A DNA stretch of 64,000 bases, from positions 1 through 64,000 of the IMG/VR virus record IMGVR_UViG_3300025869_002060; one strand, 5' to 3'. The notes beneath the pieces are model-generated. The model searched no databases, was not told where the DNA came from, and saw only the letters and a list, made by a program, of their open reading frames with translations. Below are positions 8,258 through 57,217 of the stretch, piece by piece. A program made the position numbers and the translations under genes. Numbering within the stretch: the stretch's first letter is position 1; each line of letters opens with the position of its first letter.

Positions 8258-8716
8258 ATGATAAGTACTTTTATGAAGTACTGGTTAGAATACGTTAAAG
8301 CTGGTTACGACTTGATCATGGAAGCAGAACGCAATACGTCTGTGATACTTGATGATCCAGTAGAACTACACTTGGTACATATGTTTGCACGATCAATTGA
8401 ACGTACAGACATAGGCGAAACACCAGTTGGTGTGCTTTTAAAAAAAGCAGTGTACTTCCGAGACAGAACTAAAGTATTAGAAATTGCAGACGAATGTTTG
8501 TTAGTTCACAGTTACCCACTAAGAAGAAAAACTTGGCCTAGTGAAACATATTACATTGAACTAGGATTAATGGGATATGGATATATTGATCATCCTCACA
8601 TGAGTCAACATAATAATTTTACATTGTCAAGTAAAGTTTTAAATTTTATGTTTACTCGTTCAATTGAAGACCCACCAAACACAGATATAATTTTATCTGT
8701 TGATACTCAACACTAA
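8258..8716 (+). CDS. hypothetical protein
   Basis: 152-aa ORF divergent from the DUF3307-like gene. Confidence 0.6.
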   Translation: MISTFMKYWLEYVKAGYDLIMEAERNTSVILDDPVELHLVHMFARSIERTDIGETPVGVLLKKAVYFRDRTKVLEIADECLLVHSYPLRRKTWPSETYYIELGLMGYGYIDHPHMSQHNNFTLSSKVLNFMFTRSIEDPPNTDIILSVDTQH

Positions 8717-8811: not shown

Positions 8812-8840
8812 TTGACAATACTAATAATAAATAGTATATT
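8812..8840 (+). promoter_or_regulatory. sigma70-like promoter (overlaps a TAAATA box)
   Basis: TTGACA-N17-TATATT. Confidence 0.65.
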
Positions 8841-8958: not shown

Positions 8959-8992
8959 AAAAGCCCCTAGCATTAAGTTAGGGGCTTTTTTT
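8959..8992 (+). terminator. intrinsic terminator / attenuator hairpin abutting tRNA-Trp
   Basis: AAGCCCCTA-loop-TAGGGGCTT followed by a T-tract ending 1 nt before the tRNA. Confidence 0.8.
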
Positions 8993-9066
8993 GTGGGTGT
9001 AGTGTAATGGCAACACGGCTGATTCCAAACCAGCAAACGGGGGTTCGATTCCCTCCACCTATGCCA
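8993..9066 (+). tRNA. tRNA-Trp(CCA)
   Basis: Cloverleaf; anticodon loop TTCCAAA centred on CCA (A31-C39 mismatch); G73 discriminator; encoded CCA. Confidence 0.85.
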
Positions 9067-9068
9067 AT

Positions 9069-9167
9069 TTATCGAGCAAATTGTTGTTTACTGAGTAATG
9101 TATTGATAATGTTTTTACGGTGCTGTCTAATTAGTTTTAGATAGCAAAATAAATGAAATGTATTCAT
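9069..9167 (-). CDS. riboswitch-controlled small basic peptide (32 aa, MNTFHLFCYLKLIRQHRKNIINTLLSKQQFAR)
   Basis: AAGGAGG SD 7 nt upstream of ATG; lies directly downstream of the tandem aptamers. Confidence 0.7.
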   Translation of the reverse strand: MNTFHLFCYLKLIRQHRKNIINTLLSKQQFAR

Positions 9168-9196
9168 TTCTCACCCTCCTTGGTTAAAAGTTAGGT

Positions 9197-9245
9197 GCGT
9201 TCCTTCGGTTTCATTACCTACTTCCGTCTCTTGCGAGATGAACGA
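9197..9245 (-). ncRNA. glutamine riboswitch aptamer (glnA-type), proximal copy
   Basis: Reverse complement CGTTCA-TCTC GCAA GAGA-CGGAAGTA-GGT AATGAA ACC-GAAG-GAACGC: P1 CGUU/AACG, P2 with GNRA loop, GGAAGUA/GAAG junction, P3. Confidence 0.8.
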
Positions 9246-9252
9246 TGATAAT

Positions 9253-9299
9253 GCGTTCCTTCGGCTTAATTGCCTACTTCCGCCCATTTGGGTGAACGT
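9253..9299 (-). ncRNA. glutamine riboswitch aptamer (glnA-type), distal copy
   Basis: Reverse complement CGTTCA-CCC AAAT GGG-CGGAAGTA-GGC AATTAA GCC-GAAG-GAACGC; P2 and P3 covary relative to the proximal copy. Confidence 0.8.
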
Positions 9300-9330
9300 T
9301 GTTTAGCATACGTATTTACCATAATATTGG

Positions 9331-9359
9331 TTGACTTATTGCTAATTTAGTACTATAGT
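9331..9359 (+). promoter_or_regulatory. sigma70-like promoter
   Basis: TTGACT-N17-TATAGT, divergent from the riboswitch transcript. Confidence 0.65.
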
Positions 9360-9399
9360 ATGTATATAGTAAAAAGAGTTATGTGAAGGAGTTTTATGT

Positions 9400-9621
9400 T
9401 TGTTTGAAATGGATGCATTTTCACATGCCGTGATCGCTGTAGTTTGTTTATTTATAGCATGGTATGTTGGTAGAAATTGGGGCCGGAAAAGTTTAGCAGA
9501 AGCTGTCATTGAAACAACTCTAGATAACTTAGAACGCTCTGGGTACATATGTACCGAAACTGGTAGGAATGGTGAGAAAGAACTAATTCCTATCTCAGAA
9601 ATTTTAGCAAATAAGGAATAG
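9400..9621 (+). CDS. small membrane protein
   Basis: N-terminal TM helix; AGGAG SD upstream. Confidence 0.6.
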   Translation: MFEMDAFSHAVIAVVCLFIAWYVGRNWGRKSLAEAVIETTLDNLERSGYICTETGRNGEKELIPISEILANKE

Positions 9622-10524: not shown

Positions 10525-10705
10525 GGTTTTCTAGGGAGACGTGGCGTTGATAGCGCCTAGTAGGGGATTGCAGACCCTACGATGAGAAGGAGGGTAACAC
10601 TTCCAAAACCAAGGCACGATGACAGTAAGTCCGGCTACGATCAAGTCGTTAGATGGATAGGCGAGGCCAGAGACCGGGTGAAAGCCCACAAGGACTGGGG
10701 GCTGT
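10525..10705 (+). ncRNA. candidate structured ncRNA (unassigned)
   Basis: GC-enriched intergenic stretch with several stems (GGTTTT/AAAACC, GGCG/CGCC, GTAGGG/CCCTAC, GGGT-GAAA-GCCC, AGTCC/GGACT). Confidence 0.45.
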
Positions 10706-10757
10706 ATTCAAAAAAGTTTTGAAGTTGATTCCATCAGATCGTTTTATAAATAACTGT

Positions 10758-11690
10758 ATGATAAAAATTGTTACTAATAATATAGAATTACCCTCAATGG
10801 TGTTTGAGCCAATTAGTAACCCTTTTGTAGACAAGTTCCTTTTAAAAATTAAAGATGTGCAAAGCAGATTTGCAATGGTTGAATGGCTTGAACGCATTCC
10901 CTACACTCGCAATGATGATATGGGTAGTTGGGAAAATCATAAAAAAGAATCCTACAAAGATTTTGATATTGGAATCAATGGTATTAAAAAACTAGGATAT
11001 GATTTTCCTGTAAACTACGAAGATATAAAAATTGATTTAAACCTTGATACAGTACATCTATTAAATCGTTTGCATAGGTATTTTACCACAGGTTGTCGAT
11101 CAACGTTTGAAGAAATGCAAACATACGATGACAAAACATTCTTTAAATTAAAAACTGAACACCAATGGACTTTCAACGATCTAATACATCATGTAAATGA
11201 CGGTGTACACAGATTAGAAAATTTTATTGATACGCCACGTGCATTAGAATTCCCAGCAGAAACAGAATATCAGATTGCATTTGATTCTCATCAACCATTT
11301 GATTCAGCTGATACTGCCAATGATTATTTTGTTGACATTACCCAAGATGATCAACAATACTTTAGTGATAAACTAGAATACGAAATGTGGTTACCTTGGC
11401 ACCAAATTCTAGGCAAGTGTTATTGGGACGCCTATTTTGCATACGACGATCCAACACAATGGGATTGTAGCGAACATGTTCAATATAGTGGCAGTTTTGC
11501 ATTGGGAAAACGTACACAAGCACGAAATCCTAAAATTGAAGAATGGCTAAAATCGTGGGGTATTGACCCAGGTCCAATGACATGTGGAATACCGGTGGCT
11601 AGATTGGTTAGTGGTCAGCAGACTTTTGACTTTTTGCAATCACAAAAAGAAGGTCCTTGTTCGCTTATTTGTGAAATTGAAATAAACTAA
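10758..11690 (+). CDS. hypothetical protein
   Basis: ORF 10653..11690; likely start ATG 10758 just after TATAAATA at 10745. Confidence 0.7.
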   Translation: MIKIVTNNIELPSMVFEPISNPFVDKFLLKIKDVQSRFAMVEWLERIPYTRNDDMGSWENHKKESYKDFDIGINGIKKLGYDFPVNYEDIKIDLNLDTVHLLNRLHRYFTTGCRSTFEEMQTYDDKTFFKLKTEHQWTFNDLIHHVNDGVHRLENFIDTPRALEFPAETEYQIAFDSHQPFDSADTANDYFVDITQDDQQYFSDKLEYEMWLPWHQILGKCYWDAYFAYDDPTQWDCSEHVQYSGSFALGKRTQARNPKIEEWLKSWGIDPGPMTCGIPVARLVSGQQTFDFLQSQKEGPCSLICEIEIN

Positions 11691-12653: not shown

Positions 12654-13268
12654 ATGTTAGCAAACCTATTAGACGGAGTCAACAGAGCTTTGGTTACTAA
12701 GTTGGTAATTTTACATACCTTAGTAATTGCTGTCTCAAACTACCTAGTAACAATTAGATTTGATTTATTTCCCGGGGCAGAATTGCCACTATTTGGATCA
12801 TTTCCACTCGCGGCCGCGGCGTTCACATTTCCGATCGTTGTTGTTGCAACTGATTTGACTGTACGGTTAATTGGTAAACAAGCAGGAAGAGCCGTTGTGG
12901 CTATGGCCATTATTCCAGCTATTGTGGCGTCGGTGCTAGTGCTATTAGCACTTGGTGACGAACACGCCTACAGAGTTGGACTTGCAAGTGGCACAGCCTA
13001 TGCAATTGGAACAATGCTTGATGTATATGTATTCCAACACATTCGTGAAAAGTATACCGAAATGTGGTGGGCGGCACCAGCAATTTCTACAGTTGTTGCC
13101 AATATCATCGACACCTATGCATTCTTCTATACAGCGTTCTATCCGGCACCTTGGGTACACGGCGTAGCGTTCAATAATACACTTACTAAAATTGTAGTAG
13201 GTCTTATTGTATTCTTACCAGCATACGGTATGTTATTATCGTATCTTAGGAATAGAGTTAAGTCTTAA
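12654..13268 (+). CDS. yhhQ: queuosine precursor transporter (YhhQ/Vut family)
   Basis: SNYLV, AFTFP...ATDL, G...D..VF, STVVANIIDT..F motifs; multi-TM; AAGGAG SD. Confidence 0.8.
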   Translation: MLANLLDGVNRALVTKLVILHTLVIAVSNYLVTIRFDLFPGAELPLFGSFPLAAAAFTFPIVVVATDLTVRLIGKQAGRAVVAMAIIPAIVASVLVLLALGDEHAYRVGLASGTAYAIGTMLDVYVFQHIREKYTEMWWAAPAISTVVANIIDTYAFFYTAFYPAPWVHGVAFNNTLTKIVVGLIVFLPAYGMLLSYLRNRVKS

Positions 13269-19121: not shown

Positions 19122-19569
19122 GTTAGTTAATTACTATAGCTGGTTTGTTCTAGCAATGGTATTACTAATTGTTACCAATGTATTAGGTCGTTACTTCTTT
19201 GATCTTAGATTTGATTTTGCAGTCGACGTGAGTTGGCAGTTGTATGGAATAATGATTATAATGGGTTGTAGTCATGCATTATCAACAGACTCGCATATAA
19301 GAACTGACGTATACTGGAACAAATTCAGTGATAAAGTTAAAGCTCGTATTGATTTTGTAAGTTATCTAATTTTATTTTTTCCTGCTATCAGTATACTCAC
19401 ATACAAAAGTATTTTTGATACTATAAGAAGTGTAGCACAAAACGAAACAAGCAGTGCAACAATGGCTCAACTCATAGTATGGCCATTGAAGATAGGAATT
19501 ACATTAGGATTAATATTATTACTGTATCAAGGTGCAGTAAACACAAGAAAGTGTTTTAAAAGATGTTAG
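19114..19569 (+). CDS. dctQ: TRAP transporter small permease
   Basis: Four TM helices; VLGRYFF, HIRTD motifs. Confidence 0.85.
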   Translation: MTKLVNYYSWFVLAMVLLIVTNVLGRYFFDLRFDFAVDVSWQLYGIMIIMGCSHALSTDSHIRTDVYWNKFSDKVKARIDFVSYLILFFPAISILTYKSIFDTIRSVAQNETSSATMAQLIVWPLKIGITLGLILLLYQGAVNTRKCFKRC

Positions 19570-20942
19570 CCATTGTAATGTTAGTGGCAATGATTGCCGG
19601 CATATTTGTAGGTGTTCCAGTAGCATTTACTCTCTTATTTTTAGCACTAGGTTTTGGCTACATCACAATGGGAGAAAATGTATTTGATTTAGCCTATTAT
19701 AATTTAATAGGTGGGCTTAGTGACGAAGTGTTCATGGCAATACCAATGTTTATATTCATGGGTTATGTTGCTGAACGGGCAGGTTTGGTAGAAGGATTGT
19801 TTGACAGTCTTAAACGTATGCTAAGTGGAATCAAAGGAAGTTTGTACTATGTTGTTATTGTAATTGCTATTCTTATCAGTCTGGCTACAGGTGTAGTTGG
19901 TGCCAGTGTGACCTTACTGGGTATTATGGCCGCGCCGCACATGATGCGGTTGGGTTACGATCACAAATTAAGTGCTGGTGTAATTGCCGCCGGAGGATCA
20001 ATGATTATTATTCCTCCAAGTGTTCCTTTAATTGTTATGGCACCAACAATGAATGTTAGTATTGTTGATCTATATGCGGCTGTAATGGGTCCAGGATTGA
20101 TGATTGCTTTTATGTTTATGGTTTATTGTGCCTATCAAGTTAGACGATATCCTGAACTAGCACCAGCAACAGAACATGAACCTGTTCCGTGGACCTTGTA
20201 TACTAGATTAATACTTGATGTTTTTCCATTGGCTTTCTTAATAGCAGTTACATTAGGCAGTATGTTATTTGGACTAGCAACCAGTACAGAAGCAGGATCA
20301 TTTGGAGCCGCAGGTGCTCTAATACTTGCTCTTGCCAATAGAAGTTTAACCTGGGAAAGATTGCAAGAGGCTATGTTAAAAACAACAAGCACAAGTGCCG
20401 TTGTTATGTTACTTGCTATAGCCTCAACTATTTTTGGTGCAGTTTTTACAGGATTGGGCGGGGACAATATTATTGTTGATGCTCTTAATAGTTTACCAAT
20501 ACCAACTTGGGCACTGGTAGGCACAATACTTGTATTGTGTCATATACTAGGCTGGCCGTTTGAATGGCCTGTAGTGGTACTGGTTTTTTTACCGATGTTT
20601 ATGCCCATCCTGGTAAATAACAACGTCGACATGTTGTGGTTTGGAGCCGCACTAGGGATAGTGATACAAACGGCCTACCTAACTCCTCCTGTTGCACTTA
20701 CATCATATTATTTAAAACAAGTTGTTCCTTCCTGGGATTTAACTATGATATTTAAATCTATGATGCCTTTTATGTGGATTCAAGTTTTAGCAGTCTGCAT
20801 ATTATTCCTAACCCCTAGTATCGCCACCTGGTTTCCAAAATATTTGGACCATCAGAGGCAGGTACTAAATAATTCTGTTACAGGAGAGAAACCTGTAGGA
20901 GAAATAGATTTCTTATCAAAGAGCAAGTCAAAATCAAATTAA
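19563..20942 (+). CDS. dctM: TRAP transporter large permease
   Basis: AIPMFIFMG, IIPPS(V)PLIV, YLTPPV motifs; about 12 TM. Confidence 0.92.
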   Translation: MLAIVMLVAMIAGIFVGVPVAFTLLFLALGFGYITMGENVFDLAYYNLIGGLSDEVFMAIPMFIFMGYVAERAGLVEGLFDSLKRMLSGIKGSLYYVVIVIAILISLATGVVGASVTLLGIMAAPHMMRLGYDHKLSAGVIAAGGSMIIIPPSVPLIVMAPTMNVSIVDLYAAVMGPGLMIAFMFMVYCAYQVRRYPELAPATEHEPVPWTLYTRLILDVFPLAFLIAVTLGSMLFGLATSTEAGSFGAAGALILALANRSLTWERLQEAMLKTTSTSAVVMLLAIASTIFGAVFTGLGGDNIIVDALNSLPIPTWALVGTILVLCHILGWPFEWPVVVLVFLPMFMPILVNNNVDMLWFGAALGIVIQTAYLTPPVALTSYYLKQVVPSWDLTMIFKSMMPFMWIQVLAVCILFLTPSIATWFPKYLDHQRQVLNNSVTGEKPVGEIDFLSKSKSKSN

Positions 20943-20956
20943 AGGAGATATTTTGG

Positions 20957-22048
20957 ATGAAAAAGACTTTAGTAGGAAGTATTGTAGCTGGTGCATTAGC
21001 TTTGTTTTCAACAGGCGTACTAGCAGATGATACAAAAACTTTAAAAATTGCAAGTTCCTACCCAGCAGTAAGCACACTTACTGATCAAGCAACTTTTATT
21101 GCAGATCGTGTTAAGACACTTACTGAAGGAAAGGTAATTATGGAATTTAAACCAGCTGGCGCATTAGTTCCAGCATTCCAAGTACTTGATGCAACAGCAT
21201 CTGGTGCGGCTGACGGAGCATGGACTCAGTCATATTACTGGGTTGGTAAAGATAAAACTTTATCGTTATTCAACTCACCCTTAGGTGGACCATACGGTAT
21301 GGACGGTATGGATTTCTTAGGCTGGATGTTCCACGGTGGCGGACTTGATCTATACAGAACTTTCTACAAGGATGTTTTAAAATTAGATGTTGTTCCTTTT
21401 CCAGTTATGCCAGCACAGAATCAGCCATTAGGTTGGTTTCATCGCCCAATTAAAGATCTAGCAGATCTAAAAAACTTTAAATGTCGTCAAACAGGTATTA
21501 ACGTAGAACTGTATGCTCGTATGGGTATGCAGACTATTGGTATGCCAGGTGGTGAGATTGCCGCCGCAGGGCGTAAAGGTGTTATTAATTGTGCAGAATT
21601 TGTTGGTGGTTTAGAAGATCAACGCATGGGCTTCAGCAAAATTTGGAAGTATTACTATCTAAACAGTTTGCATGAGCATTCAAACACAGGCGATTTACTA
21701 CTCAATGGTAAAGTATGGCGTAGCCTTTCAAAGCAACAGCAGACAGCAATTCGTTCTGCCGCTTATGAATCATATCTATGGTGGATGACTGACATGCAAG
21801 GTAAAAACGGTCAAGCACTAGCAGAAATGATTGAACAAGATGGAGTTAAAGTTATGAAAACTCCAGCAGATATCATTGAAGCAGAGTTAAAGACTATTGA
21901 TGCTATGTTAGCTGAAGAGAGTGCAAAGAACCCTTGGTTTGCTAAAGTACTTGCTTCACAAAAAGCATGGGCAAAGAAAGTTGTACCATTTAAGAACGTT
22001 GCGTTTACACCTTATAACTATGCCGCAGATTACTACTGGGGCAATTAA
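20957..22048 (+). CDS. dctP: TRAP substrate-binding protein (DctP/TakP-like)
   Basis: Signal peptide; PAGALVPAFQVLDA, YYWVGK, QPLGWF motifs; AAGGAG SD. Confidence 0.9.
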   Translation: MKKTLVGSIVAGALALFSTGVLADDTKTLKIASSYPAVSTLTDQATFIADRVKTLTEGKVIMEFKPAGALVPAFQVLDATASGAADGAWTQSYYWVGKDKTLSLFNSPLGGPYGMDGMDFLGWMFHGGGLDLYRTFYKDVLKLDVVPFPVMPAQNQPLGWFHRPIKDLADLKNFKCRQTGINVELYARMGMQTIGMPGGEIAAAGRKGVINCAEFVGGLEDQRMGFSKIWKYYYLNSLHEHSNTGDLLLNGKVWRSLSKQQQTAIRSAAYESYLWWMTDMQGKNGQALAEMIEQDGVKVMKTPADIIEAELKTIDAMLAEESAKNPWFAKVLASQKAWAKKVVPFKNVAFTPYNYAADYYWGN

Positions 22049-22073
22049 GTTTTAAACAAAACTAAGTTATTAG

Positions 22074-22099
22074 AAAAGGGCCGTTGGCCCTTTTCTTTT
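22074..22099 (+). terminator. intrinsic terminator
   Basis: AAAAGGGCC-GTT-GGCCCTTTTCTTTT. Confidence 0.75.
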
Positions 22100-22261
22100 G
22101 ACTGAATTTTCTCACGTATAAATAGTGTTAGCAACGCCCATTAGTGGACGTCGGATACCTTGGACGCTTTGGTAATCATAAACCATTTATCTAGTTGACT
22201 AGTAACGCCCTTCCGTGTATAGTGTGAGAGTACTATTAGCATTAACTTTTAGGTATCACGC

Positions 22262-23443
22262 ATGTTCACATCTCTTCAGCACCCTGACCGATATGGTTAT
22301 TATCAAATTGGTAATCGACGTACTTACAGTAAACTAGAGTTCGTTGATTATCTTAATCAATATCCTGCAGACTGGCATTGGGATTACAACGATGCATTCT
22401 TTAGCAGTTTTGATTGGGCAACAGAACCCGCAGAAGATATCAACACACTATATCGTAAGCGAGCAGAAGCACTACGAGAACAATACGATTACGTTGTTCT
22501 CTTCTATTCGGGTGGATACGACAGTTCGAATATGCTATATGCATTTTTGGATAACGGAATTCCTATAGATGAAATCTGTACGTACTATGCAAGTCAGGAT
22601 ACATTCACAGGACAAAAAATAGAACTTGATAATTTTACCTGGCAGAAACTAGATGCCATTGAAAAGAAATATCCCAATATAAAGATCACACGTTGGGATT
22701 ACGGAGATGAATTTTTTAATTGGTCTGACAAAATTAAACAAGCAGGCGCCGGCGCTAACATGGTAGAAATGATAGCAGGAGGACTGATTTCTATTAACCG
22801 TATTGTATTAGATTTTGGTCATGAATATGTTCCACACTGGAAGAAGTTGCTCATGCAAGGCAAAAAGGTTGCATGGGTACACGGTGCAGATAAACCTATG
22901 TTGCGATATCACAACGATACGTGGAAATTTAACTTTCATGATGGAATAATCAATGGTCGATTAACTCCAGTACGGCAAATACTTGATCAAGGTGATATTG
23001 GAAATATTGAATTATTCTATTGGGCTCCCGATGCGACTTGTGCAAATATTATTATCAAACAATGTCATTTACTTAAAAATTATTACACCCCACAAGCAAA
23101 GATAGACTTTTCTAAAATACCAGGTGTTAAAAAGCATAATATTGAATATGGTTGGGAAATAGATAATATCTCACTTGACTTTGTTAAACAACTATATCCA
23201 AGACTATTCTCTGGTAACTTGATTTTACCAAATGAAAATTGGTCAACGATTAAAAGTGCCCGCAGTATGTTTGGCAACAGAGATCATTGGTTCACACAAT
23301 TAAACCATCATGCAGTAGATGAGTTTCATCGAATGTGGAAAGGAGCAAATAGCTCAATACATTCTCATTGGCATGATTGGTTCCACAACGGCACTATCGA
23401 AAGCGGTATTCGTAGTTGCATTACACAAGATTATATTATATGA
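22262..23443 (+). CDS. PP-loop (N-type ATP pyrophosphatase superfamily) protein
   Basis: VLFYSGGYDS motif (SGGxDS). Confidence 0.6.
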   Translation: MFTSLQHPDRYGYYQIGNRRTYSKLEFVDYLNQYPADWHWDYNDAFFSSFDWATEPAEDINTLYRKRAEALREQYDYVVLFYSGGYDSSNMLYAFLDNGIPIDEICTYYASQDTFTGQKIELDNFTWQKLDAIEKKYPNIKITRWDYGDEFFNWSDKIKQAGAGANMVEMIAGGLISINRIVLDFGHEYVPHWKKLLMQGKKVAWVHGADKPMLRYHNDTWKFNFHDGIINGRLTPVRQILDQGDIGNIELFYWAPDATCANIIIKQCHLLKNYYTPQAKIDFSKIPGVKKHNIEYGWEIDNISLDFVKQLYPRLFSGNLILPNENWSTIKSARSMFGNRDHWFTQLNHHAVDEFHRMWKGANSSIHSHWHDWFHNGTIESGIRSCITQDYII

Positions 23444-24708
23444 TTGAAGTTGTAATTGCATTAGCGGCCGGAATATGTGCAGGTGTGTTTGCTGGGTTAA
23501 TACCCGGTGTTCCAATTATGATGGGCTTTATGCTTTTCTTGCCAATGGTCAGTGCTGATGCATTTTGTTTAAGTTTGTATGGAGTGGTAATGACTCTTGG
23601 TACACAGTTCTTTGGTAGCCAAGCAGTATTGTATTATCGTATTCCTGGGGAAACCAGCAGTTTCCCCACATTAATTGAAAGCAAAAACTTTACAACACCT
23701 GAACAACTACGTCATACTATACAAGTGACAACCTGGGGCAGTCTTGTTGCAACTATAATTGCATTGTTGCTATTATCGTTGGCTCTTACAAGTGGTGCAT
23801 TAGATTGGGTCAAGCTCAGCATTGAATTTAGAGGTCTTGTGTTTGCATTGCTTATTGGTATGTGTATATTTGGTAATGGTCATGCATTGGCAAATATTGT
23901 TATTCTTGGTCTAGCAAGTTTCTTTGCATTCTACGAAGACATTGCTCCGCTAACAGGATTTATGCCTACCTACTACTTTAGCAGTATGTTGTCTCTTATT
24001 ATTATCTTCGCAATGCAGTTGGTATGGAATAGTTCTGACAGGTTTAAAACATACTCAGTTGGAACACATTCAACGTTTAAACTACGCGAGTGGTTGCCTT
24101 TTTATGCAAAATATGGATCTCTTGGAACCGTGTTTGGACTGGTACCACAACTAGGTGCTACCTTTAGCAGTTATCTTACTTACTCGTGGTTAAAGAAGAA
24201 TAATGCCAGTCCGACACACAGAGTTGCCGGAGCAGAAACAGCGAATAACGGAGCAATAGTATTTCAATGGTTTCCGTTGTTTTTGTTTGGTATTCCAATT
24301 ACAGGCAGTGAGATAATGCTAGTATCTCATTTTAATCAATTAGGACTTGATTTTAGTTTTCTTAAAGACTGGACTCAAGTTGCATGGCTTGCAGGATTGA
24401 TCGCACTAGCAGGATTAATCTACACTAGAATTTGCTTAACGACGAATCAATTACTTTATAAAGTGGTTGGAAGAGCATTGAGCTCACGTTACCTCACAAT
24501 CGCTATTGCGTTTGGAAGCATGTACTTATTTTATTGGGTTGGTAATTACACTGCTAAGTTTATGTTAATCCATTTAATGATTTTCATTCCGGTCAGTTGG
24601 ATAGTAGCTAAATTAAAAGTAAACCTATTAGCAGTTACTATTGGAATGATATTGATGAGTGAGATACTTCTTACTTTTTATCAACTGTTACAAATTCACA
24701 TTCTATAA
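23440..24708 (+). CDS. tripartite tricarboxylate transporter TctA-like permease
   Basis: G..AGLIPG, IPGETSS, VAGAETANNGA, GIP motifs; multi-TM. Confidence 0.75.
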   Translation: MIEVVIALAAGICAGVFAGLIPGVPIMMGFMLFLPMVSADAFCLSLYGVVMTLGTQFFGSQAVLYYRIPGETSSFPTLIESKNFTTPEQLRHTIQVTTWGSLVATIIALLLLSLALTSGALDWVKLSIEFRGLVFALLIGMCIFGNGHALANIVILGLASFFAFYEDIAPLTGFMPTYYFSSMLSLIIIFAMQLVWNSSDRFKTYSVGTHSTFKLREWLPFYAKYGSLGTVFGLVPQLGATFSSYLTYSWLKKNNASPTHRVAGAETANNGAIVFQWFPLFLFGIPITGSEIMLVSHFNQLGLDFSFLKDWTQVAWLAGLIALAGLIYTRICLTTNQLLYKVVGRALSSRYLTIAIAFGSMYLFYWVGNYTAKFMLIHLMIFIPVSWIVAKLKVNLLAVTIGMILMSEILLTFYQLLQIHIL

Positions 24709-38007: not shown

Positions 38008-38967
38008 TTGAAAATGAAAATCATAGCAGGAAACAGTAATAGAGATCTCGCCGAGCTTATTTCGGAACACTGTTTTGCCGCACTTGTGTCAGCAGATATT
38101 AAAACTTTTGCTGACGGTGAAAGCAGTGTGGAGTTTTTAGAAAACATCAGAGGTGAAGATGTTTTTATTATACAATCAACTAGTACTCCAGTTAACAATC
38201 ATTTGATGGAGTTACTTATTATGGTTGATGCGGCCAAACGAAGTAGTGCCAGACGTATTACCGCAGTTATGCCATACTTTGGTTATGCACGCCAGGATCG
38301 TAAGAGTGCAAGTCGTACGCCAATTACTGCAAAACTAGTTGCTAACTTGTTAACCCAAGCAGGCGCAGATAGAATCTTAACAATGGATCTACATGCAGGA
38401 CAAATACAAGGATTCTTTGATATTCCAGTTGATGACCTAACAAGTCGTTTAGTGTTCGCAAAAGATATTAAACGTAGCATTGAAGGGTTTTACGAGACTG
38501 AAATTGAGAACCAACCACAAACAGTATTTGTAAGTCCAGATGCTGGAGGTACAGTACGAGCAAGAAAATTTGCTGATATGTTTGGCGGAGATATTGCTAT
38601 TGTTGACAAACGTCGACCACGAGCAGGACAAAGTGAAGTAATGAACCTAATAGGTGAAGTTAAAGATAAACATGCAATCCTAGTAGACGATATTGTAGAT
38701 AGCGGAGGAACATTATGTCATGCCGCACAAGCAATTATGGATCAAGGTGCATTGAGCGTTCGTGCTTATATTACACACGGAGTACTGTCAGGCGAAGCAG
38801 TAAAAAGAATTGAAAAAAGTGTATTGTCCGAACTAGTAGTTACGGATAGTATCAACTCACGAGATATAACTAAGTTAAAGAAGGTACGTGAAGTATCTGT
38901 TGGAACATTATTTGGCGAAGCAATTCGTCGAGTAGCAAACGAAGAATCAGTGAGCTCGTTATTTTAA
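38008..38967 (+). CDS. prs: ribose-phosphate pyrophosphokinase (PRPP synthetase)
   Basis: [45 protein letters not shown]. Confidence 0.97.
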
Positions 38968-41289: not shown

Positions 41290-42768
41290 ATGTCCGAAAT
41301 CGTTTTATTAACAGGACTCGCAGTAACTGGTAGATTATATAGATCTATGGGCGGAGCTCAATTGGCTTGGTGGTTACGGCAATCTAACTATGATGTACAA
41401 GTAATTGATTTTTTCTGTCAGATGAGCGACGAGGATTTACTTAAACTATACGCAAAGTTTATTACTAAAAGAACAAGAATAGTGGGCTTTGGAATCATGG
41501 GAACATACAATCCTATGATGGGACAACTAGTAAGATTTGTTGAAGAAATGATGCCCACACTTCGCAAGAAATTTCCACATGTTATATTTGTATGTGGCGG
41601 TGCTTGTGCCCAACTTGCAAGTAAACGTTACACACAAGGATCAGGTTTTGATTATTACTATTATGGATATGCAGAAAATACTTTTCTAAGTTTATGTAAT
41701 CAAGTTTTTAGAAAAGGTTCTCAGGTTGATGTAGAAAGAAAACTTGGTAATAGGATTATTAGGGAATCAACTATATGCCCCTTAGATGAATCATCGTTAT
41801 TTACAATTAAAAGAGACGGGCATAGATGGCACGATAAAGATTGTATTATGCCTAACGAAAGTTTACCAATTGAAATAGGAAGAGGTTGTATTTTTAAATG
41901 TAAATTTTGTGCATTTCCACATGTTGGTAAAAAGAAAGGTGAGTATACAAGAACGTTACAACACCTAGAAGAAGAAATACTTAATAATTATTATAAGTTT
42001 GGTTCAACAAAATACTATTTGCTTGATGATACATTCAATGATGATGTTGATAAAATTAAAGATTTTAGCGACATGGTACAACGTTTACCTTTTAAAATTC
42101 ATATAGCAGGTTTTTGTAGAGCTGATTTACTTTGGGCTAATCCTGATACTCCACACTTACTTGAAGAAGCAGGAATGATTGGAACTTACTTTGGTATTGA
42201 AAGTTTTAACCAGTGTGCTTCAAAGTTTGTTGGTAAACCTTGGAGTTTCCAACATGCCCAAGACTACCTTATTAAGTTACGTCATGAGATATGGAAAGAA
42301 CGTATAAGTTTTCGTACAAGTATGATTATTGGATTGCCTGGTGACGATCGCAAAGATTATATTAAATGGCACAGATGGTTTGTAGAAAATGAAATTCCAA
42401 ACTGGAGTTGGCATCCTCTACATCTTGAACGTGATCTACGAGCCCAAAATAATAGTACTATTGACAAGGATGCTGAAAAACACGGATACACTTGGATAAC
42501 TGAAAATAGTAAAGTTATGTGGAAGCACAAAGAGTCTGGTATGACATGGCGTGATGCAATGGAAATGTATACTGAATTTGAAGCACTTAAAGCACCATAT
42601 CAAGTTAAACATTGCTGGGGAGCAATAGAAGAATTTAATTACCTACCACCAGATGCTGATCCTCAGGATCATAACTTTGTTAAAGTACGAACCCAGCATA
42701 ACAAACAGTTAAATGAAGATCGCAAAACCTTCTTAAATGGTTATATTCGAAAGTTACTTGCCCTATAA
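41290..42768 (+). CDS. cobalamin-binding-domain radical SAM protein
   Basis: N-terminal B12-binding-like domain (VCGG, YYYGYAE); GRGCIFKCKFC; DDTF; GIESF; IIGLPG. Confidence 0.85.
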   Translation: MSEIVLLTGLAVTGRLYRSMGGAQLAWWLRQSNYDVQVIDFFCQMSDEDLLKLYAKFITKRTRIVGFGIMGTYNPMMGQLVRFVEEMMPTLRKKFPHVIFVCGGACAQLASKRYTQGSGFDYYYYGYAENTFLSLCNQVFRKGSQVDVERKLGNRIIRESTICPLDESSLFTIKRDGHRWHDKDCIMPNESLPIEIGRGCIFKCKFCAFPHVGKKKGEYTRTLQHLEEEILNNYYKFGSTKYYLLDDTFNDDVDKIKDFSDMVQRLPFKIHIAGFCRADLLWANPDTPHLLEEAGMIGTYFGIESFNQCASKFVGKPWSFQHAQDYLIKLRHEIWKERISFRTSMIIGLPGDDRKDYIKWHRWFVENEIPNWSWHPLHLERDLRAQNNSTIDKDAEKHGYTWITENSKVMWKHKESGMTWRDAMEMYTEFEALKAPYQVKHCWGAIEEFNYLPPDADPQDHNFVKVRTQHNKQLNEDRKTFLNGYIRKLLAL

Positions 42769-45385: not shown

Positions 45386-46760
45386 TTATACACCAGACTT
45401 ACAAAAATTATTCTTAGAAATGTTGATGGACGACGCACAAAGTTTTGTTCGTGTTGCAAACATTTATAATCCTAACAACTTTGATCAAGGATTAAGACCA
45501 ACTGCTGAGTTCCTTAAAGACCATAGTGAAAAGTATAAAGTTCTTCCAACGCACGATCAAGTAAAAGCACAAACTGGTGTAGATCTAAAACCACACACAG
45601 ACTTATCTGAAGACCATTATGATTGGTTTATGGCTGAGTTTGAAGCATTTACAAGACGTGGTGAATTAGAAAGAGCAATTCTTAAGAGTGCCGACTTATT
45701 AGAAAAAGGCGAATATGATCCAGTTGAGAAACTGATCAAAGATGCAGTGCAAATAAGTCTTACAAAAGATATGGGTACTGATTATTTTGCAGATCCACGT
45801 GGTAGATTGATGGCTGTTAAGAGCAACAACGGTCAGGTAAGTACAGGCTGGGAAACACTTGATAAAAAACTATTTGGTGGAATGAATAGAGGCGAGTTGA
45901 ATATCTTTGCAGGTGGCAGTGGATCTGGTAAAAGTTTGTTTATGCAAAACATAAGTCTAAATTGGATCACACAAGGTGTTAACGGAGTGTACATTACACT
46001 AGAACTTAGTGAAGAGCTTTGTGCAATGAGAATGGATGCAATGACAGCAAATATTGCAACCAGCCAAATATTTAAAGATCTTGACACACTTGAAATGAAG
46101 ATTAAGATGGCAGGAAAGAAAAGCGGAAAATTCCGTATTAAGTATATGCCAGCACAAAGCAATGTTAATCAGATTAGAAGTTATCTTAAAGAACTTCAAG
46201 TACAGACTGGCATGAAAGTTGATTTTGTAATGATTGACTATCTTGATCTTGTTATGCCAGTTAGTGCAAAAGTAAGTCCAAATGATTTGTTTATTAAAGA
46301 CAAGTATGTAAGTGAAGAACTACGTAATTTATCAAAAGAACTAAACGTATTAATGATTACTGCATCACAGTTGAACAGAAGTGCAGTTGAAGAAATAGAA
46401 TTTGATCATTCGCATATTGCTGGTGGATTGAGTAAAATTAATACTGCTGATAATGTTTTTGGTATTTTTACAAGTCGTGCAATGCGTGAACGTGGTAGAT
46501 ATCAAATACAGTTAATGAAAACAAGAAGCAGTAGTGGTGTTGGTCAAAAGGTAGACTTAGAATTTAATCTAGAAAGTTTACGTATTACAGATCCCGGTGA
46601 AGAAGGACAAGATAGAGGTCCAGTTGAAGCAAGTAGTGATATACTTGGAAAGATTAAAACTTCTAGTGTAACTGACAAACCTAACTTGGATACAGCCAAA
46701 GTTGGTGCAAGTGTAGACGGTAGCAAGTTAAAGAACATGCTGGCTGGTTTAAAATCATGA
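45378..46760 (+). CDS. replicative DNA helicase (DnaB/gp41 family)
   Basis: GGSGSGKS, YITLEL, MIDYLDL, TASQLNR, SKINTAD, LMKTR. Confidence 0.92.
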   Translation: MTDYTPDLQKLFLEMLMDDAQSFVRVANIYNPNNFDQGLRPTAEFLKDHSEKYKVLPTHDQVKAQTGVDLKPHTDLSEDHYDWFMAEFEAFTRRGELERAILKSADLLEKGEYDPVEKLIKDAVQISLTKDMGTDYFADPRGRLMAVKSNNGQVSTGWETLDKKLFGGMNRGELNIFAGGSGSGKSLFMQNISLNWITQGVNGVYITLELSEELCAMRMDAMTANIATSQIFKDLDTLEMKIKMAGKKSGKFRIKYMPAQSNVNQIRSYLKELQVQTGMKVDFVMIDYLDLVMPVSAKVSPNDLFIKDKYVSEELRNLSKELNVLMITASQLNRSAVEEIEFDHSHIAGGLSKINTADNVFGIFTSRAMRERGRYQIQLMKTRSSSGVGQKVDLEFNLESLRITDPGEEGQDRGPVEASSDILGKIKTSSVTDKPNLDTAKVGASVDGSKLKNMLAGLKS

Positions 46761-47791
46761 TCACGTATGAAGATATACGTGAAATACATCTTGAACTAAC
46801 TACACTATGCAATGCAAAATGCCCACAATGTCCACGCAACTTTAATGGATTCACCTTTAACGACGGATATCCTGAAACTTATATGACGCTGGATCAAGCC
46901 AAGCATATATTTAATCCTACTTTTCTCAAGCAACTTACACAATTTACAATCAATGGTAACTATGGAGACATGGTAATGAATCCAGATTCTGTTGACATTG
47001 TTGAGTACCTTAGAGAAACAAACTCAGATGTAGAAATTATTATCAGTACCAATGGAGGTGCTAGAAACAAAGAGTTTTGGCAAAGACTTGCTAAAGCAAA
47101 TACAAAAGTATACTTTGATCTTGACGGTATTGATGAAGTACACAGTTTATACAGACAAAATACTCGATATCAAACAGTTATTAAGAATGCATTAACATAT
47201 ATTGGTGCAGGCGGCCATGCTATATGGAAATGTATTAAATTCAAACACAATGTACATCAAATTGAAGAAATGCGCCAATTGAGTGTTGATTTTGGTTTTA
47301 AAACATTTGAACTGATTGAGCATGGACGAGATACAGGTCCAGTGTTTAACGACAACAAAGAACTAACACACATACTAGGAGATTACAACGGTACAACAGA
47401 CTTTGAAACTATGTTTGTTGATGAACGTTCTGAATCTCGTACTGTAGATAATACAGCCTGGCGGTTTGATCCAACAGTTGACGATATTCAACTTGGGTGT
47501 GATACATTACAGAACAACAGGATTTATATTGCGGCCAATGGCGATGTTGCTCCTTGTTGTTATACTGGTTTCTTTCCAAATACATATGGTAAAAAAACAT
47601 ATATGGAACCATTAAATGCCCAGTTAACTGAGTTAATGTCAGAATATAATGCACTTGAACATGATATAGAAACATGTATCAAATGGTTTAATGGTTTTAC
47701 AGACCTATGGAAGAAGAAAAGTTATAAGGATGGGCGTTTATTGGTCTGTGATGAGAACTGTGGGAGCACCAATTGTTCTCAAAAACAATAA
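46757..47791 (+). CDS. radical SAM protein with SPASM/twitch-like tail
   Basis: CNAKCPQC, NGNYGD, STNGG, C...NGDVAPCC...CDENC. Confidence 0.88.
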   Translation: MITYEDIREIHLELTTLCNAKCPQCPRNFNGFTFNDGYPETYMTLDQAKHIFNPTFLKQLTQFTINGNYGDMVMNPDSVDIVEYLRETNSDVEIIISTNGGARNKEFWQRLAKANTKVYFDLDGIDEVHSLYRQNTRYQTVIKNALTYIGAGGHAIWKCIKFKHNVHQIEEMRQLSVDFGFKTFELIEHGRDTGPVFNDNKELTHILGDYNGTTDFETMFVDERSESRTVDNTAWRFDPTVDDIQLGCDTLQNNRIYIAANGDVAPCCYTGFFPNTYGKKTYMEPLNAQLTELMSEYNALEHDIETCIKWFNGFTDLWKKKSYKDGRLLVCDENCGSTNCSQKQ

Positions 47792-56979: not shown

Positions 56980-57136
56980 TTGGATTAAAAACAGAGTAAT
57001 GGAACGTACTTCATGGGACGGCGGCGCATTAATTGCAGTCGGACTAGTTGTGCTATTTCTTGGACCATTTGCAAAATGGGCGGCTTATGCGGCTATTGCT
57101 TATGGTGCTTGGACTATGTGGAAAAAAGAAGACTAA
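56972..57136 (+). CDS. small two-TM membrane protein (54 aa)
   Basis: Read manually: MINWIKNRVMERTSWDGGALIAVGLVVLFLGPFAKWAAYAAIAYGAWTMWKKED. Confidence 0.65.
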   Translation: MINWIKNRVMERTSWDGGALIAVGLVVLFLGPFAKWAAYAAIAYGAWTMWKKED

Positions 57137-57217
57137 TATCTTTTGCACATGGTTTATGGGGTTCCATCCCCGTACCGGCTAGAACCCGGATTGGACTACT
57201 ATTATAGGAGAAAACAA

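Follow-up and report, generated by a model that had tools for sequence, protein, structure and literature searches.

A tandem glutamine-I riboswitch was found on the minus strand of a jumbo phage contig, where it precedes a gene for a very basic peptide of 32 aa. The stretch of DNA that was analyzed (64,000 nucleotides, here called the window) is the start of this 228-kb contig, and the cassette of aptamers and peptide gene lies within a plus-strand tRNA region. The locus is best read as a real tandem glutamine riboswitch that translationally controls a real conserved micropeptide common to host-type modules. A probability of about 0.75 is assigned to this reading, which concerns the architecture of the cassette and not the function of the peptide. 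The switch and the architecture were already known; the peptide family, its distribution over heterotrophs and phages, and the re-reading of the locus in phage Melnitz are new. The positions of all features are collected in Table 1.

Table 1. Features of the riboswitch-micropeptide cassette and its downstream surroundings (window positions).
Feature	Position	Strand	Basis and remarks
TAAATA box, candidate phage-type (T4-late-like) promoter element	9313..9318	-	sequence; 14 nt upstream of aptamer 1
Glutamine riboswitch aptamer 1 (RF01739)	9250..9300	-	cmscan, 58.8 bits, E 2e-10
Inter-aptamer spacer AUUAUCAU, 8 nt	9245..9252	-	same or near-same in viral and proteobacterial tandem leaders
Glutamine riboswitch aptamer 2 (RF01739)	9194..9246	-	cmscan, 62.4 bits, E 2e-11
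Predicted expression-platform hairpin burying the SD	9172..9197	-	RNAfold, shuffles, covariation
Shine-Dalgarno (SD) AAGGAGG	9175..9181	-	7 nt upstream of ATG (9165-9167)
Small A-U-rich hairpin including the start codon	9155..9170	-	RNAfold prediction
32-aa micropeptide gene (MNTFHLFCYLKLIRQHRKNIINTLLSKQQFAR)	9069..9167	-	ORF; outlying member of the 'WC[FY]..IKQH..KINFLL' family
tRNA-Trp(CCA)	8993..9066	+	ARAGORN, Rfam; 3 nt beyond the peptide stop codon
Bidirectional hairpin terminator GCCCCUA...UAGGGGC, U-runs on both strands	8959..8989	.	sequence, RNAfold

The initial annotation, made from the letters alone, had described two imperfect minus-strand repeats with compensatory changes in P2 and P3 as a tandem glnA-type riboswitch, preceded by a TAAATA box and followed by a strong SD and a basic 32-aa ORF. 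All of these elements are present, and the covariance-model check that it proposed yielded two full-length matches to RF01739 (Glutamine riboswitch, glnA leader; model length 53, gathering score 35 bits). Both aptamers cover model positions 1-53 of 53 and score above the gathering threshold. The Downstream-peptide model, named alongside the glnA model, gave no such result; apart from RF01739, no Rfam family matched positions 9100-9400 at E<=1, RF01704 included. Every pair of the RF01739 model is canonical in both copies. P1 is CGUUC/GAACG in each (CGUUC of aptamer 1 at 9294-9298), while P2 differs in a compensatory manner (CCC/GGG in aptamer 1, UCUC/GAGA in aptamer 2), as does P3 (GGC/GCC and GGU/ACC, respectively). 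The two copies have the CGGAAGUA and GAAGGAACGC cores in common, and the three-stem P1/P2/P3 plan with the conserved junction strands CGGAAGUA and GAAGGAACG is present in both. Known glutamine-I riboswitches are likewise full-length and canonical in P1, P2 and P3 with conserved cores, and their tandem form is already described, reportedly also by Ames and Breaker in 2011 and by Ren in 2015. As in the known systems, the aptamers of the window stand directly upstream of an SD and a start codon, an arrangement that fits translational control.

Over 21 tandem leaders, P2 and P3 of aptamer 1 covary, and aptamer 2 is near-invariant in the tandem leaders of phages, Alpha- and Betaproteobacteria (alignment A4). 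An origin of the tandem by local duplication was rejected because distant cellular and viral tandems have the same spacer and the same type of aptamer 2. Together with the preceding C, the spacer reads CAUUAUC, and aptamer 2 contains the complementary stretch GGUAAUG in its P3 and loop. The resulting helix was predicted by RNAalifold, is kept in 19-21 of the 21 sequences with one compensatory change, and may act as a gate on aptamer 2.

The linker behind aptamer 2 provides a candidate expression platform. A predicted hairpin begins directly 3' of P1 of aptamer 2 and pairs CACCU (9193-9197) with GGGUG (9172-9176) and CUU (9188-9190) with AAG (9179-9181), thereby covering the SD. Folding of positions 9150-9200 with RNAfold gave -13.3 kcal/mol (z -4.65), a stability that was equaled by none of 200 shuffled sequences, and the correctly folded aptamer 2 and the SD hairpin can coexist in folding calculations. 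The SD helix covaries between loci (CACC/GGUG, CACU/AGUG, CACUC/GAGUG, CAUCU/AGAUG, CUUUAC/GUAAAG), and the covariation score over approximately 87 distinct linkers was reached in 0 of 1,000 permutations. The hairpin is also retained in the consensus fold of the 21 tandem leaders, and the identical SD and spacing were observed in 110 of about 120 viral cassettes. A stable and covarying pairing that involves the ribosome-binding site is what is expected of the expression platform of a functional riboswitch, and a modeled SD hairpin abutting P1 fits a translational switch.

In the proposed mechanism, the TAAATA phage-type promoter would start a short transcript carrying the two tandem glutamine-I aptamers, and the pyrimidine-rich linker after P1 of aptamer 2 would fold back and bury the SD. 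Glutamine binding would destabilise the SD-occluding structure and the 32-aa ORF would be translated (a translational ON switch), with the tandem arrangement steepening the response by presumed cooperativity. The sole output would be a 4-kDa, very basic single-helix peptide. Opening of the switch by glutamine is suggested by analogy with cyanobacterial representatives, which have different expression platforms. Both glutamine riboswitch types raise expression after ammonium upshift (Klahn 2018, PMC6212724), and competition of the ligand with an RBS-occluding structure was proposed by Huang 2019 (PMC6698751). Tandem copies were linked to more digital control (Weinberg 2010, PMC2864571); in referring to tandem copies and to gifB as a precedent, the initial annotation agrees with the literature (PMC6212724, PMC2864571).

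The reverse direction, a translational OFF switch, appears unlikely. In such a switch the linker would pair with the aptamer core at low glutamine and leave the SD free, and glutamine would release the linker so that the SD hairpin closes; the peptide would be made at low glutamine. Complementarity exists between the linker CCUAACUUUU and the invariant core GGAAGUAGG, and this pairing appears in the MFE fold of the leader, which at -43.1 kcal/mol lies 13.7 kcal/mol below the native-like aptamer-plus-SD-hairpin fold (-29.4 kcal/mol), although MFE models ignore aptamer tertiary structure and ligand energy. The SD hairpin can moreover form next to a fully folded aptamer 2, and the two, being contiguous, could stack. 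However, the core:linker pairing has no covariation support because the sequence involved is invariant, both classes of glutamine riboswitch behaved as ON switches in vivo (PMC6212724, PMC6698751), and nitrogen starvation represses the genes that follow glnA and Downstream-peptide RNAs (PMC2864571). The ON switch is retained as the preferred direction.

The peptide encoded behind the aptamers has a pI of 11.1, a net charge of about +6 and a mass of approximately 4 kDa, and AlphaFold predicted a single helix over residues 3-31 (pLDDT 88). It was assigned to a family, 'WC-IKQH', that was defined here from alignments A1 and A5 by an ORF of 28-40 aa whose start lies 25-32 nt past a glutamine-I aptamer, a motif of the type aromatic-x-x-aromatic-Cys-aromatic at the N terminus, a basic middle part containing His16, and I/V-N-x-L-L around residues 21-25. 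The alignment of the window peptide spans its whole length, with 57% identity to the peptide of locus L040; the peptide has C8, Y9, H16, N22 and L25, while F7 replaces the near-universal W7 and T23 replaces F23. Members of the family are 28-33 aa long, very basic and helical, follow the consensus M-D/N-x-F/Y-T-L/F-W-C-F/Y...IKQH...K-I-N-F-L-L, and are always encoded 25-30 nt behind a glutamine aptamer. A hand-written DNA pattern recovered at least 86 distinct family peptides of 28-33 aa from marine metagenomes, which share conserved positions beyond those forced by the pattern, and a profile search of cluster representatives placed the family in 14 representative clusters among 1.84e9 proteins. 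Within the reading frame, 29% of changes are synonymous and no stops occur; out of frame the corresponding values are 8-11% and 17-24 stops. Third-position bias marks coding as well. By these substitution patterns, the 32-aa ORF is coding and its protein is under purifying selection.

Searches of the peptide family against Pfam, NCBIfam, PHROGs, the ESM Atlas and PDB sequences were negative or at chance level. The window family (A1) and the Burkholderiales family (A2) are related to each other (hhalign 93%, E 2.9e-7). The term "orphan", which was initially applied to the peptide, proved wrong, as its conserved family is large and is also encoded in proteobacterial chromosomes and in phage Melnitz.

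The cultured phage Melnitz infects Methylophilales (OM43) and contains an unannotated 32-aa ORF (MZ577097, about 46469-46567) homologous to the window peptide (hhalign 96.4% against the family profile), which stands behind the same class of linker. The two carriers differ otherwise: Melnitz is a 141-kb T4-like phage (Kyanoviridae) with a single aptamer, whereas the phage of the window is PA5oct/Rak2-like, measures 228 kb and has a tandem leader. When the tRNA and riboswitch region of the window, or the riboswitch alone, was compared with cultured phages by blastn, only tRNA matches or chance matches of 26 nt were obtained, the aptamer being too short and too variable a target for BLAST; a 61-nt query consisting of the 3' half of an aptamer and the linker did match Melnitz. 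Like the window phage, Melnitz and pelagimyophages carry a glutamine-I aptamer, and a study of 2022 had already described glutamine riboswitches from phages that infect marine heterotrophs (OM43, SAR11; Buchholz et al., PMC9004378). The initial suggestion of an undescribed nitrogen-sensing circuit is therefore only partly right: the peptide as the regulated product is undescribed, the switch in phages of heterotrophs is published (PMC9004378).

Buchholz et al. interpreted the riboswitch of Melnitz as controlling the tmRNA gene ssrA (PMC9004378), which raises the question of whether an RNA could be the output in the window. The tRNA-Trp lies on the opposite strand directly past the stop codon, and the 3' UTR of the cassette would therefore be antisense to it. 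With an incidental ORF, read-through antisense to tRNA-Trp or a neighboring tmRNA, as proposed for Melnitz, would be the regulated RNA. Of 121 viral cassettes, 16 have a tRNA or tmRNA gene no more than 400 nt away, and in seven of these the order is tmRNA then aptamer. Nevertheless, an RNA output is very improbable. In Melnitz and its look-alikes the aptamer is located 3', not 5', of the tmRNA, and in Melnitz it is 5' of the unannotated 32-aa ORF. The orientation relative to tRNA-Trp varies between loci, no nearby tRNA exists in 105 of 121 viral and 21 of 22 cellular cassettes, the SD and start are conserved, and the ORF is, by its substitution pattern, under selection at the protein level.

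The downstream surroundings leave the peptide as the only product of the cassette, given the antisense tRNA and the terminator in the window and the convergent genes that follow the cassette at other loci (L062, L129, L134 and L145). Beyond the peptide gene, the minus strand has no terminator-like structure other than this hairpin, which was missed by the consensus scanner because its loop exceeds 8 nt. By the same consensus scan, no minus-strand sigma-70 promoter or terminator was detected near the cassette. Proteins encoded nearby (10653-11690 and 8258-8716) match only their own contig and a distant 338-kb relative, in which no riboswitch was detected within the 14 kb examined (locus L123).

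On the upstream side, the TAAATA box may serve as the promoter of the cassette. In 63% of viral cassettes such a box precedes the first aptamer by no more than 35 nt, where about 2% are expected, and the same holds for 86% of the metagenomic cassettes of the window peptide family (again about 2% expected). Its distance to CGUUCA is usually 5-9 nt with a mode of 6 nt, and the 14 nt observed in the window fall into the tail of this distribution. T4-type late promoters carry TATAAATA at about -10 and are served by a gp55-type sigma factor; the window has GGTAAATA before aptamer 1. Neither element is enriched in the window, with 3 occurrences of GGTAAATA (3.3 expected) and 6 of TATAAATA (7.3 expected).

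Until 2018 the glutamine riboswitch was seen as a cyanobacterial device, and its affiliation in metagenomes was unclear. Among the 22 genome matches that make up the cellular cassettes (loci L124-L145), 21 are non-cyanobacterial, and 15-16 are tandems with the same ATTATCAT spacer and aptamer 2. The tandem cassettes of marine Burkholderiales, SAR116 and other Proteobacteria have leaders that are 76-82% identical overall to the window leader, and the 8-nt spacer, aptamer 2, the ACCUAAC linker and the GGAGGGUG SD block are the same as in the window. The peptides of Burkholderiales cassettes (MNLWTQYCRRQAR..EH..) are homologous to the window family, whereas those of the SAR116 type (MTYRQYQWK...HKLLNYR) have no detectable homology to it. 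The promoters differ as well: cellular cassettes have sigma-70-type promoters (TTGACA-N17), while viral cassettes, like that of the window, have the TAAATA box. The neighbors of cellular cassettes are ordinary chromosomal genes with no phage genes close by, and no published description of cellular riboswitch-micropeptide cassettes was found in the literature. Since the tandem leader, spacer, linker and peptide class are common to proteobacterial chromosomes, the phage copy is best read as a host-type effector, and the phage would express this glutamine-status effector from its own promoter.

Compared with known glutamine-I riboswitches, the window combines a leader type (spacer, aptamer 2, linker) of proteobacterial chromosomes with a carrier that is neither a cyanobacterium nor a cyanophage but a jumbo phage akin to those of Proteobacteria, and its regulated gene encodes an unnamed 32-aa peptide and not gifB, glnA, amtB or glnB. 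The earlier impression of a proteobacterial-type phage was confirmed: for the helicase, for NrdA and for the structural genes on sister contigs, the nearest cultured relatives are PA5oct, Atu_ph07 and Rak2-like jumbo phages, which infect Proteobacteria. The phage contig bears TRAP/TTT transporter genes. No nitrogen genes were found adjoining the phage or cellular cassettes.

As to what the peptide does, the initial annotation had suggested a GS or PII modulator or a lysis-timing signal. A part in lysis timing, a holin-like or otherwise membrane-active effect, or the action of a type I toxin was considered, since the peptide is small, cationic and probably located behind a late-type promoter, and a link between the riboswitch and lysis timing was speculated on by Buchholz et al. 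2022 (PMC9004378). Such a function is very improbable. The peptide contains no hydrophobic stretch of transmembrane length, and the idea of a lytic amphipathic helix was rejected because its helical hydrophobic moment (0.16) is no greater than that of shuffled sequences (0.21). The sole holin match (PF05449) was obtained for one of 16 family members at chance level (E 0.061), and the homologues stand alone in streamlined bacterial chromosomes without nearby phage genes. Least probable of all is that the peptide represents a short glutamine synthetase inactivating factor of the IF17/IF7 type (DUF4278), derived from cyanobacteria or cyanophages, and that the cassette is simply a gifB-like unit of a cyanophage. 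The class of riboswitch would agree with this, and DUF4278 peptides with a YRG motif do follow other viral aptamers in the same scan, but the motif is absent here, none of 16 A1 members nor an A2 member matched DUF4278 (PF14105) at E<=1 while the YRG peptides did as a positive control (L034 and L074 above the Pfam cut-off), the relatives of the phage infect Proteobacteria, and the cellular homologues are found in Burkholderiales and not in cyanobacteria.

A likeness of organization to the cyanobacterial systems remains. The gifB/IF17 units and the IF17-like DUF4278 units (glutamine-I or glutamine-II, RF01704) follow the same order of aptamer, SD and a very short basic sole product, which in the case of gifB/IF17 feeds back on glutamine synthetase; the window peptide has no sequence relationship to these proteins, and its family is shorter (28-33 aa) and predicted to form a single helix. 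To our knowledge, the only understood output of the glutamine riboswitch is the glutamine synthetase inactivating factor. By analogy, the peptide could possibly inhibit or modulate nitrogen assimilation, with glutamine synthetase or a partner as its target, as a functional analogue of cyanobacterial IF7/IF17. An extension of this tentative idea, more speculative still, is that marine glutamine-I riboswitches are mostly non-cyanobacterial and that, in heterotrophs with streamlined genomes (SAR11, SAR116, marine Burkholderiales, Porticoccaceae) as well as in the phages of these bacteria, eight or more mutually unrelated families of micropeptides stand under their control, with DUF4278 as the one family already known. 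These peptides might be the missing post-translational regulators of nitrogen assimilation, analogous to IF7/IF17, and might have been captured by several phage lineages under late-type promoters to reset host nitrogen metabolism according to intracellular glutamine.

Taken as a single locus, the cassette is a textbook riboswitch with a new passenger of hypothetical function. The locus nevertheless points to a widespread unannotated class of output, in which tiny basic peptides are placed under the same switch in abundant marine heterotrophs and several phage lineages. It also corrects the reading of the Melnitz/OM43 H5P1 system, where the riboswitch stands before a micropeptide gene and does not control the tmRNA, and this cultured system makes the question testable. 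As far as we know, SAR11 and some other such heterotrophs are without the classical PII/NtrBC circuitry of nitrogen regulation. If the peptides act on nitrogen assimilation, a gap in the nitrogen regulation of streamlined bacterioplankton would be filled, and phages would be shown to read the glutamine of their hosts directly.

The tandem glutamine riboswitch, Shine-Dalgarno (SD) sequence and short ORF that the initial annotation had placed at 9069-9345 were borne out by covariance model searches. Both aptamers match RF01739 over its full length (gathering score 35) with all modelled pairs canonical. A permissive scan of 9100-9400 detected RF01739 alone and no Downstream-peptide/glutamine-II match, so that only the first of the two Rfam families considered, glnA, was found. 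P1 and the two conserved junction strands are common to both copies, which are separated by an 8-nt spacer (AUUAUCAU), and the compensatory changes claimed between the repeats were recovered exactly, both in P2 (CCC/GGG in aptamer 1, UCUC/GAGA in aptamer 2) and in P3 (GGC/GCC and GGU/ACC, respectively). This is a genuine, typical riboswitch, and both the tandem form and the short-ORF target are of known kinds. Since all five tRNAs and nearly all long ORFs of the window occupy the plus strand, the cassette stands by itself on the minus strand within a tRNA region. The peptide is the sole product of this glutamine-controlled unit, and the hairpin beyond tRNA-Trp would terminate transcription both ways. 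A good sigma-70-like promoter (TTGACT-17-TATAGT, 9331-9359, plus strand) is directed outward, to a 73-aa ORF on the side opposite the cassette that contains a hydrophobic segment (9400-9621, plus strand), which makes the 100-nt gap 9301-9399 a divergent control region. Another promoter close to consensus (TTGACA-17-TATATT, 8812-8840) is found between tRNA-Thr and the hairpin. Three times, in unrelated contexts, a tRNA-Trp gene directly adjoins a cassette: it lies downstream and antisense in the window, upstream and sense in contig L067 (6771-6845), and downstream and sense in contig L069 (2611-2685). A tRNA or tmRNA gene lies within 400 nt of 16 of the 121 viral cassettes listed, with about 4 expected from tRNA density.

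Positions of the cassette, neighbouring and auxiliary features of the window, and the phage Melnitz counterpart
Feature	Position	Strand	Details
Glutamine riboswitch aptamer 1	9250-9300	minus	RF01739 'glnA leader', full length, 58.8 bits
Glutamine riboswitch aptamer 2	9194-9246	minus	RF01739 'glnA leader', full length, 62.4 bits
SD AAGGAGG	9175-9181	minus	7 nt upstream of ATG
Peptide ORF	9069-9167	minus	32 residues, ATG 9165-9167, pI 11.1, net charge about +6
tRNA-Trp	8993-9066	plus	begins 3 nt past stop codon of peptide ORF
Hairpin with U-runs on both strands	8959-8989	both	
Transporter genes	19563-24708	plus	TRAP DctM (459 aa), DctP (363 aa); TctA-family protein (430 aa)
Further auxiliary genes	38008-38967, 41290-42768, 46757-47791, 12654-13268	plus	
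Freshwater-2 RNA	57136-57220	plus	RF02980, 64.8 bits
136-aa ORF	57218-57628	plus	SD and ATG at freshwater-2 RNA end; no Pfam domain
Melnitz aptamer-to-ORF stretch	L146 1466-1635; MZ577097 about 46398-46567		

An aptamer pattern scan of IMG/VR yielded at least 120 loci, and in about 110 of those listed an SD and an ATG 20-35 nt past the aptamer open a short ORF. Several peptide families recur behind these viral aptamers among the matches listed, one of which matches the window ORF over its full length (for example L040, MDRFTLWCYTKLIKQHRRNRINFILSSL, 57% identity). Nine distinct members carry a clear coding signature in this reading frame: 29% of differing codon pairs are synonymous with no stops, against 8-11% synonymous and 17-24 stops in the other two frames, and differences at codon positions 1, 2 and 3 number 268, 282 and 438. 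A riboswitch with an RNA-only output is the less likely reading. Among 1.84 billion representative proteins, a profile search identified 14 clusters, all metagenomic and named at most 'hypothetical protein', some of whose gene calls run through the aptamer. At the DNA level, a metagenome pattern (aptamer end, gap, ATG, aromatic-x-x-aromatic-Cys-aromatic) found at least 119 loci, including TARA Oceans and GOS contigs, which encode at least 86 distinct peptides, mostly of 28-33 aa; the window peptide is therefore not the orphan it had been called. Outside the forced pattern positions, T5, I13-K14-Q15-H16, K20-I21-N22-F23, L25 and K27 are strongly conserved. The window peptide is an outlying member, with F7 in place of W7 (W in 82 of the 86 distinct peptides listed) and T23 in place of F23. 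The peptide is basic, of 4 kDa, and its N-terminus carries a conserved aromatic-Cys motif that is followed eight residues later by a His. AlphaFold with the family alignment predicts a single helix (residues 3-31, pLDDT 88), whose amphipathicity in the window peptide is not beyond chance; a lytic or holin-like function is considered less likely. Sequence searches of Pfam, NCBIfam, PHROGs, ESM Atlas and PDB gave no match, and a literature search found no published description of these riboswitch-linked peptides. YRG-motif peptides encoded after other viral aptamers served as a control and did match DUF4278, the IF17 domain, two of them above the Pfam cut-off. An IF17-like identity of the window family was therefore ruled out at the sequence level. 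Other riboswitch-linked families, unnamed, end in '..NILS.DPRLQ.I' and '..DNPFYP'.

Directly 3' of aptamer 2 P1, an SD hairpin is formed by pairing of CACCU to GGGUG, which overlaps the SD end, and of CUU to the SD bases AAG; a further small hairpin is predicted to cover the AUG. The 51-nt segment with the SD hairpin folds at -13.3 kcal/mol (z = -4.65; none of 200 shuffles as stable), and with aptamer 2 included RNAfold gives the Rfam aptamer fold together with this hairpin. In a set of 87 distinct linkers, covariation is seen between the 5' strand and the strand that follows the SD (CACC/GGUG, CACU/AGUG, CACUC/GAGUG, CAUCU/AGAUG, CUUUAC/GUAAAG). The mean helix score of 4.89 compares with 4.43 +/- 0.07 for permuted partners and is reached in none of 1000 permutations, a test that is inflated by kinship among the sequences, which nonetheless hold at least five independent helix variants. 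The hairpin is also retained in the RNAalifold consensus of 21 tandem leaders, and it is the same kind of structure as the RBS-occluding one postulated for the glutamine-II switch (Huang et al., PMC6698751). As expression rises with glutamine in vivo for both glutamine riboswitch types (Klahn et al., PMC6212724), the window switch is by analogy taken to be ON with glutamine. The opposite design, an OFF switch, appears improbable; it would draw on the ability of linker CCUAACUUUU to pair with the invariant core GGAAGUAGG and on a full-leader MFE of -43.1, far below a native-like secondary structure at -29.4. From phages to two proteobacterial classes, spacer, aptamer 2 and linker hardly change, whereas aptamer 1 stems vary freely. 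The spacer CAUUAUC could pair with the complementary GGUAAUG in P3 and loop of aptamer 2; the consensus fold predicts this helix, which 19-21 of the 21 sequences retain, and one compensatory change occurs in it. Unliganded aptamer 1 would, we infer, let the spacer disrupt aptamer 2; such gating would require both sites to be filled and would steepen the response, as has been associated with tandem copies (Weinberg et al., PMC2864571).

Glutamine riboswitches had been described as limited to cyanobacteria and marine metagenomic sequences of unknown affiliation (Klahn et al. 2018, PMC6212724); in the literature after 2018, nothing further was found beyond Buchholz 2022 (PMC9004378) on phages and a 2025 note on SAR86 MAGs. 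When one genome from each GTDB species was scanned for the 3' half of the aptamer together with the adjoining linker class of the window (ACYTAAC), 22 cellular loci were detected, 21 of them non-cyanobacterial. Carriers include Pelagibacteraceae, SAR116, several marine Burkholderiales/Betaproteobacteria, Porticoccaceae, 'Ca. Marisalimonas' and a complete 'Ca. Levibacter' chromosome, and several matches lie on contigs of 0.1-2.2 Mb. L135 (a 7.4-kb contig binned as Dehalococcoidales) and L131 (a Flavobacteriales MAG) show viral-type features (TAAATA box, viral-type peptides) and may be mis-binned phage contigs, so the range of cellular carriers is to be judged from long contigs only. Tandem aptamers occur in 15-16 of the 22 loci, with the spacer of the window and nearly identical aptamer 2 and linker (common pattern GAACGC-ATTATCAT-CGTTCATCTCG.AAGAGA ... 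ACCTAACTTTAA..GGAGGGTG; 76-82% overall identity between window and cellular leaders). The basic peptides behind these leaders are 35-40 aa long and fall into two types. One, the Burkholderiales type (MNLWTQYCRRQAR.EH.KAQMV..MLLRALK), is found in viral contigs too and is homologous to the window family over its full length (hhalign probability 93%, E 2.9e-7) and shares Cys8 and His/Tyr16 with it; the SAR116/alphaproteobacterial type (MTYRQYQWK...HKLLNYR) has no detectable relation to the family. Cellular cassettes adjoin ordinary chromosomal genes (GST, EamA, TonB receptors, CBS, RraA), which are often convergent, so the peptide is the sole product in cells too, and homologues of the window peptide stand alone in marine bacterial chromosomes. 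At the SAR11 loci, one aptamer precedes a peptide of some 65-70 aa that bears an '...NGNGTSGY...' motif and is common in viral contigs too. This second family (about 64-70 aa, '...R.EV.ING.GTSGY..K.G.N.G.VLGH...'), without a Pfam domain, follows single glutamine aptamers in SAR11 (Pelagibacteraceae) and Porticoccaceae genomes (L125 7379-7588, L136, L138) and in many viral contigs, for example L002, L007 and L018. In a SAR116 single-cell genome (L143 1850-7366), gltB, which encodes the 1816-aa large subunit of glutamate synthase, directly follows a single glutamine-I aptamer; a riboswitch target in nitrogen assimilation is thereby placed in a named lineage of heterotrophs.

The family also has a member in a growable phage-host pair. 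In the GenBank record of OM43 phage Melnitz (MZ577097), an aptamer (L146 1466-1514; 52.8 bits) begins just past the 3' end of the tmRNA and is followed by linker ACTTAACCTTAATGGGGAGAGTGTTATG and an unannotated 32-aa ORF, MTLYQQWCYLKAQKEYRRRQKILMYFRIRLKG, which matches the family profile (hhalign 96.4%, E 1.3e-9). The sole GenBank annotation there is an opposite-strand 33-aa ORF, MelnitzEXVC044M_89. The order permuted tmRNA, aptamer, peptide was found again in seven viral contigs, and the ARAGORN tmRNA call often overlaps the aptamer, which accounts for the earlier reading of the Melnitz locus, where the riboswitch was taken to control the tmRNA (Buchholz et al., PMC9004378).

Cellular cassettes have a TTGACA-N17-(-10) promoter a few nt upstream of aptamer 1, which viral cassettes lack. 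Among the matches listed, TAAATA instead occurs within 35 nt upstream in 67 of 107 viral cassettes and, for the window family, in 60 of 70 metagenomic ones (about 2% expected by chance), usually ending 5-9 nt before CGUUCA; it resembles the T4-type late promoter TATAAATA. In the window, the distance from the end of GGTAAATA to the aptamer is 14 nt, a value in the distribution's tail, and the motif is not enriched across the window as a whole, so that the box is a likely but putative phage-type promoter here.

The initial description of the window as proteobacterial-phage-like is supported. The 228,348-nt IMG/VR contig IMGVR_UViG_3300025869_002060, whose first 64 kb form the window, encodes a replicative helicase with 48-51% identity to Agrobacterium phage Atu_ph07 and the Pseudomonas PA5oct group and an NrdA with about 57% identity to Xanthomonas, Cronobacter, Erwinia and Pseudomonas jumbo phages. 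Three metagenome contigs with an identical cassette are the same phage (99.9-100% identity). In two sister contigs the peptide family adjoins portal, capsid and protease genes with best matches in PA5oct and Rak2-like jumbo phages. The genes for DctM, DctP and TctA are unusual as auxiliary genes, being characteristic of heterotrophic Proteobacteria and not of cyanobacteria. Further auxiliary genes encode a PRPP synthetase, which shares 80% identity with one from viral contig L007; two radical-SAM proteins, the first of them a B12-binding enzyme; and a Vut_1-family transporter (putative vitamin/queuosine-precursor; 84% identical to one in L062). Freshwater-2 RNA looks like a cis-regulator of the 136-aa ORF gene. 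Other copies were found at L064 1589-1671 and L053 118-188, and homologues of the ORF lie near glutamine-riboswitch cassettes in at least 10 viral contigs. The structured RNAs cluster, contigs L053, L042 and L064 having the order glutamine aptamer, peptide, (manA RNA), freshwater-2, 136-aa ORF homologue.

IF17, an inhibitor of glutamine synthetase, is the only understood output of the glutamine-I riboswitch class. By analogy, the hypothesis that needs fewest assumptions is that the peptide exerts feedback regulation on nitrogen assimilation and serves phages in manipulating the host, a tentative reading (probability about 0.3) to which neither sequence similarity nor gene neighbourhood lends support. 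Several unrelated phage lineages carry the window family, probably under late-type promoters. Three points are new here: the regulated peptide family, which is unannotated and abundant and has cellular and cultured-phage homologues; the evidence for a whole module common to marine heterotrophs and their phages; and a correction to how the Melnitz locus is read.
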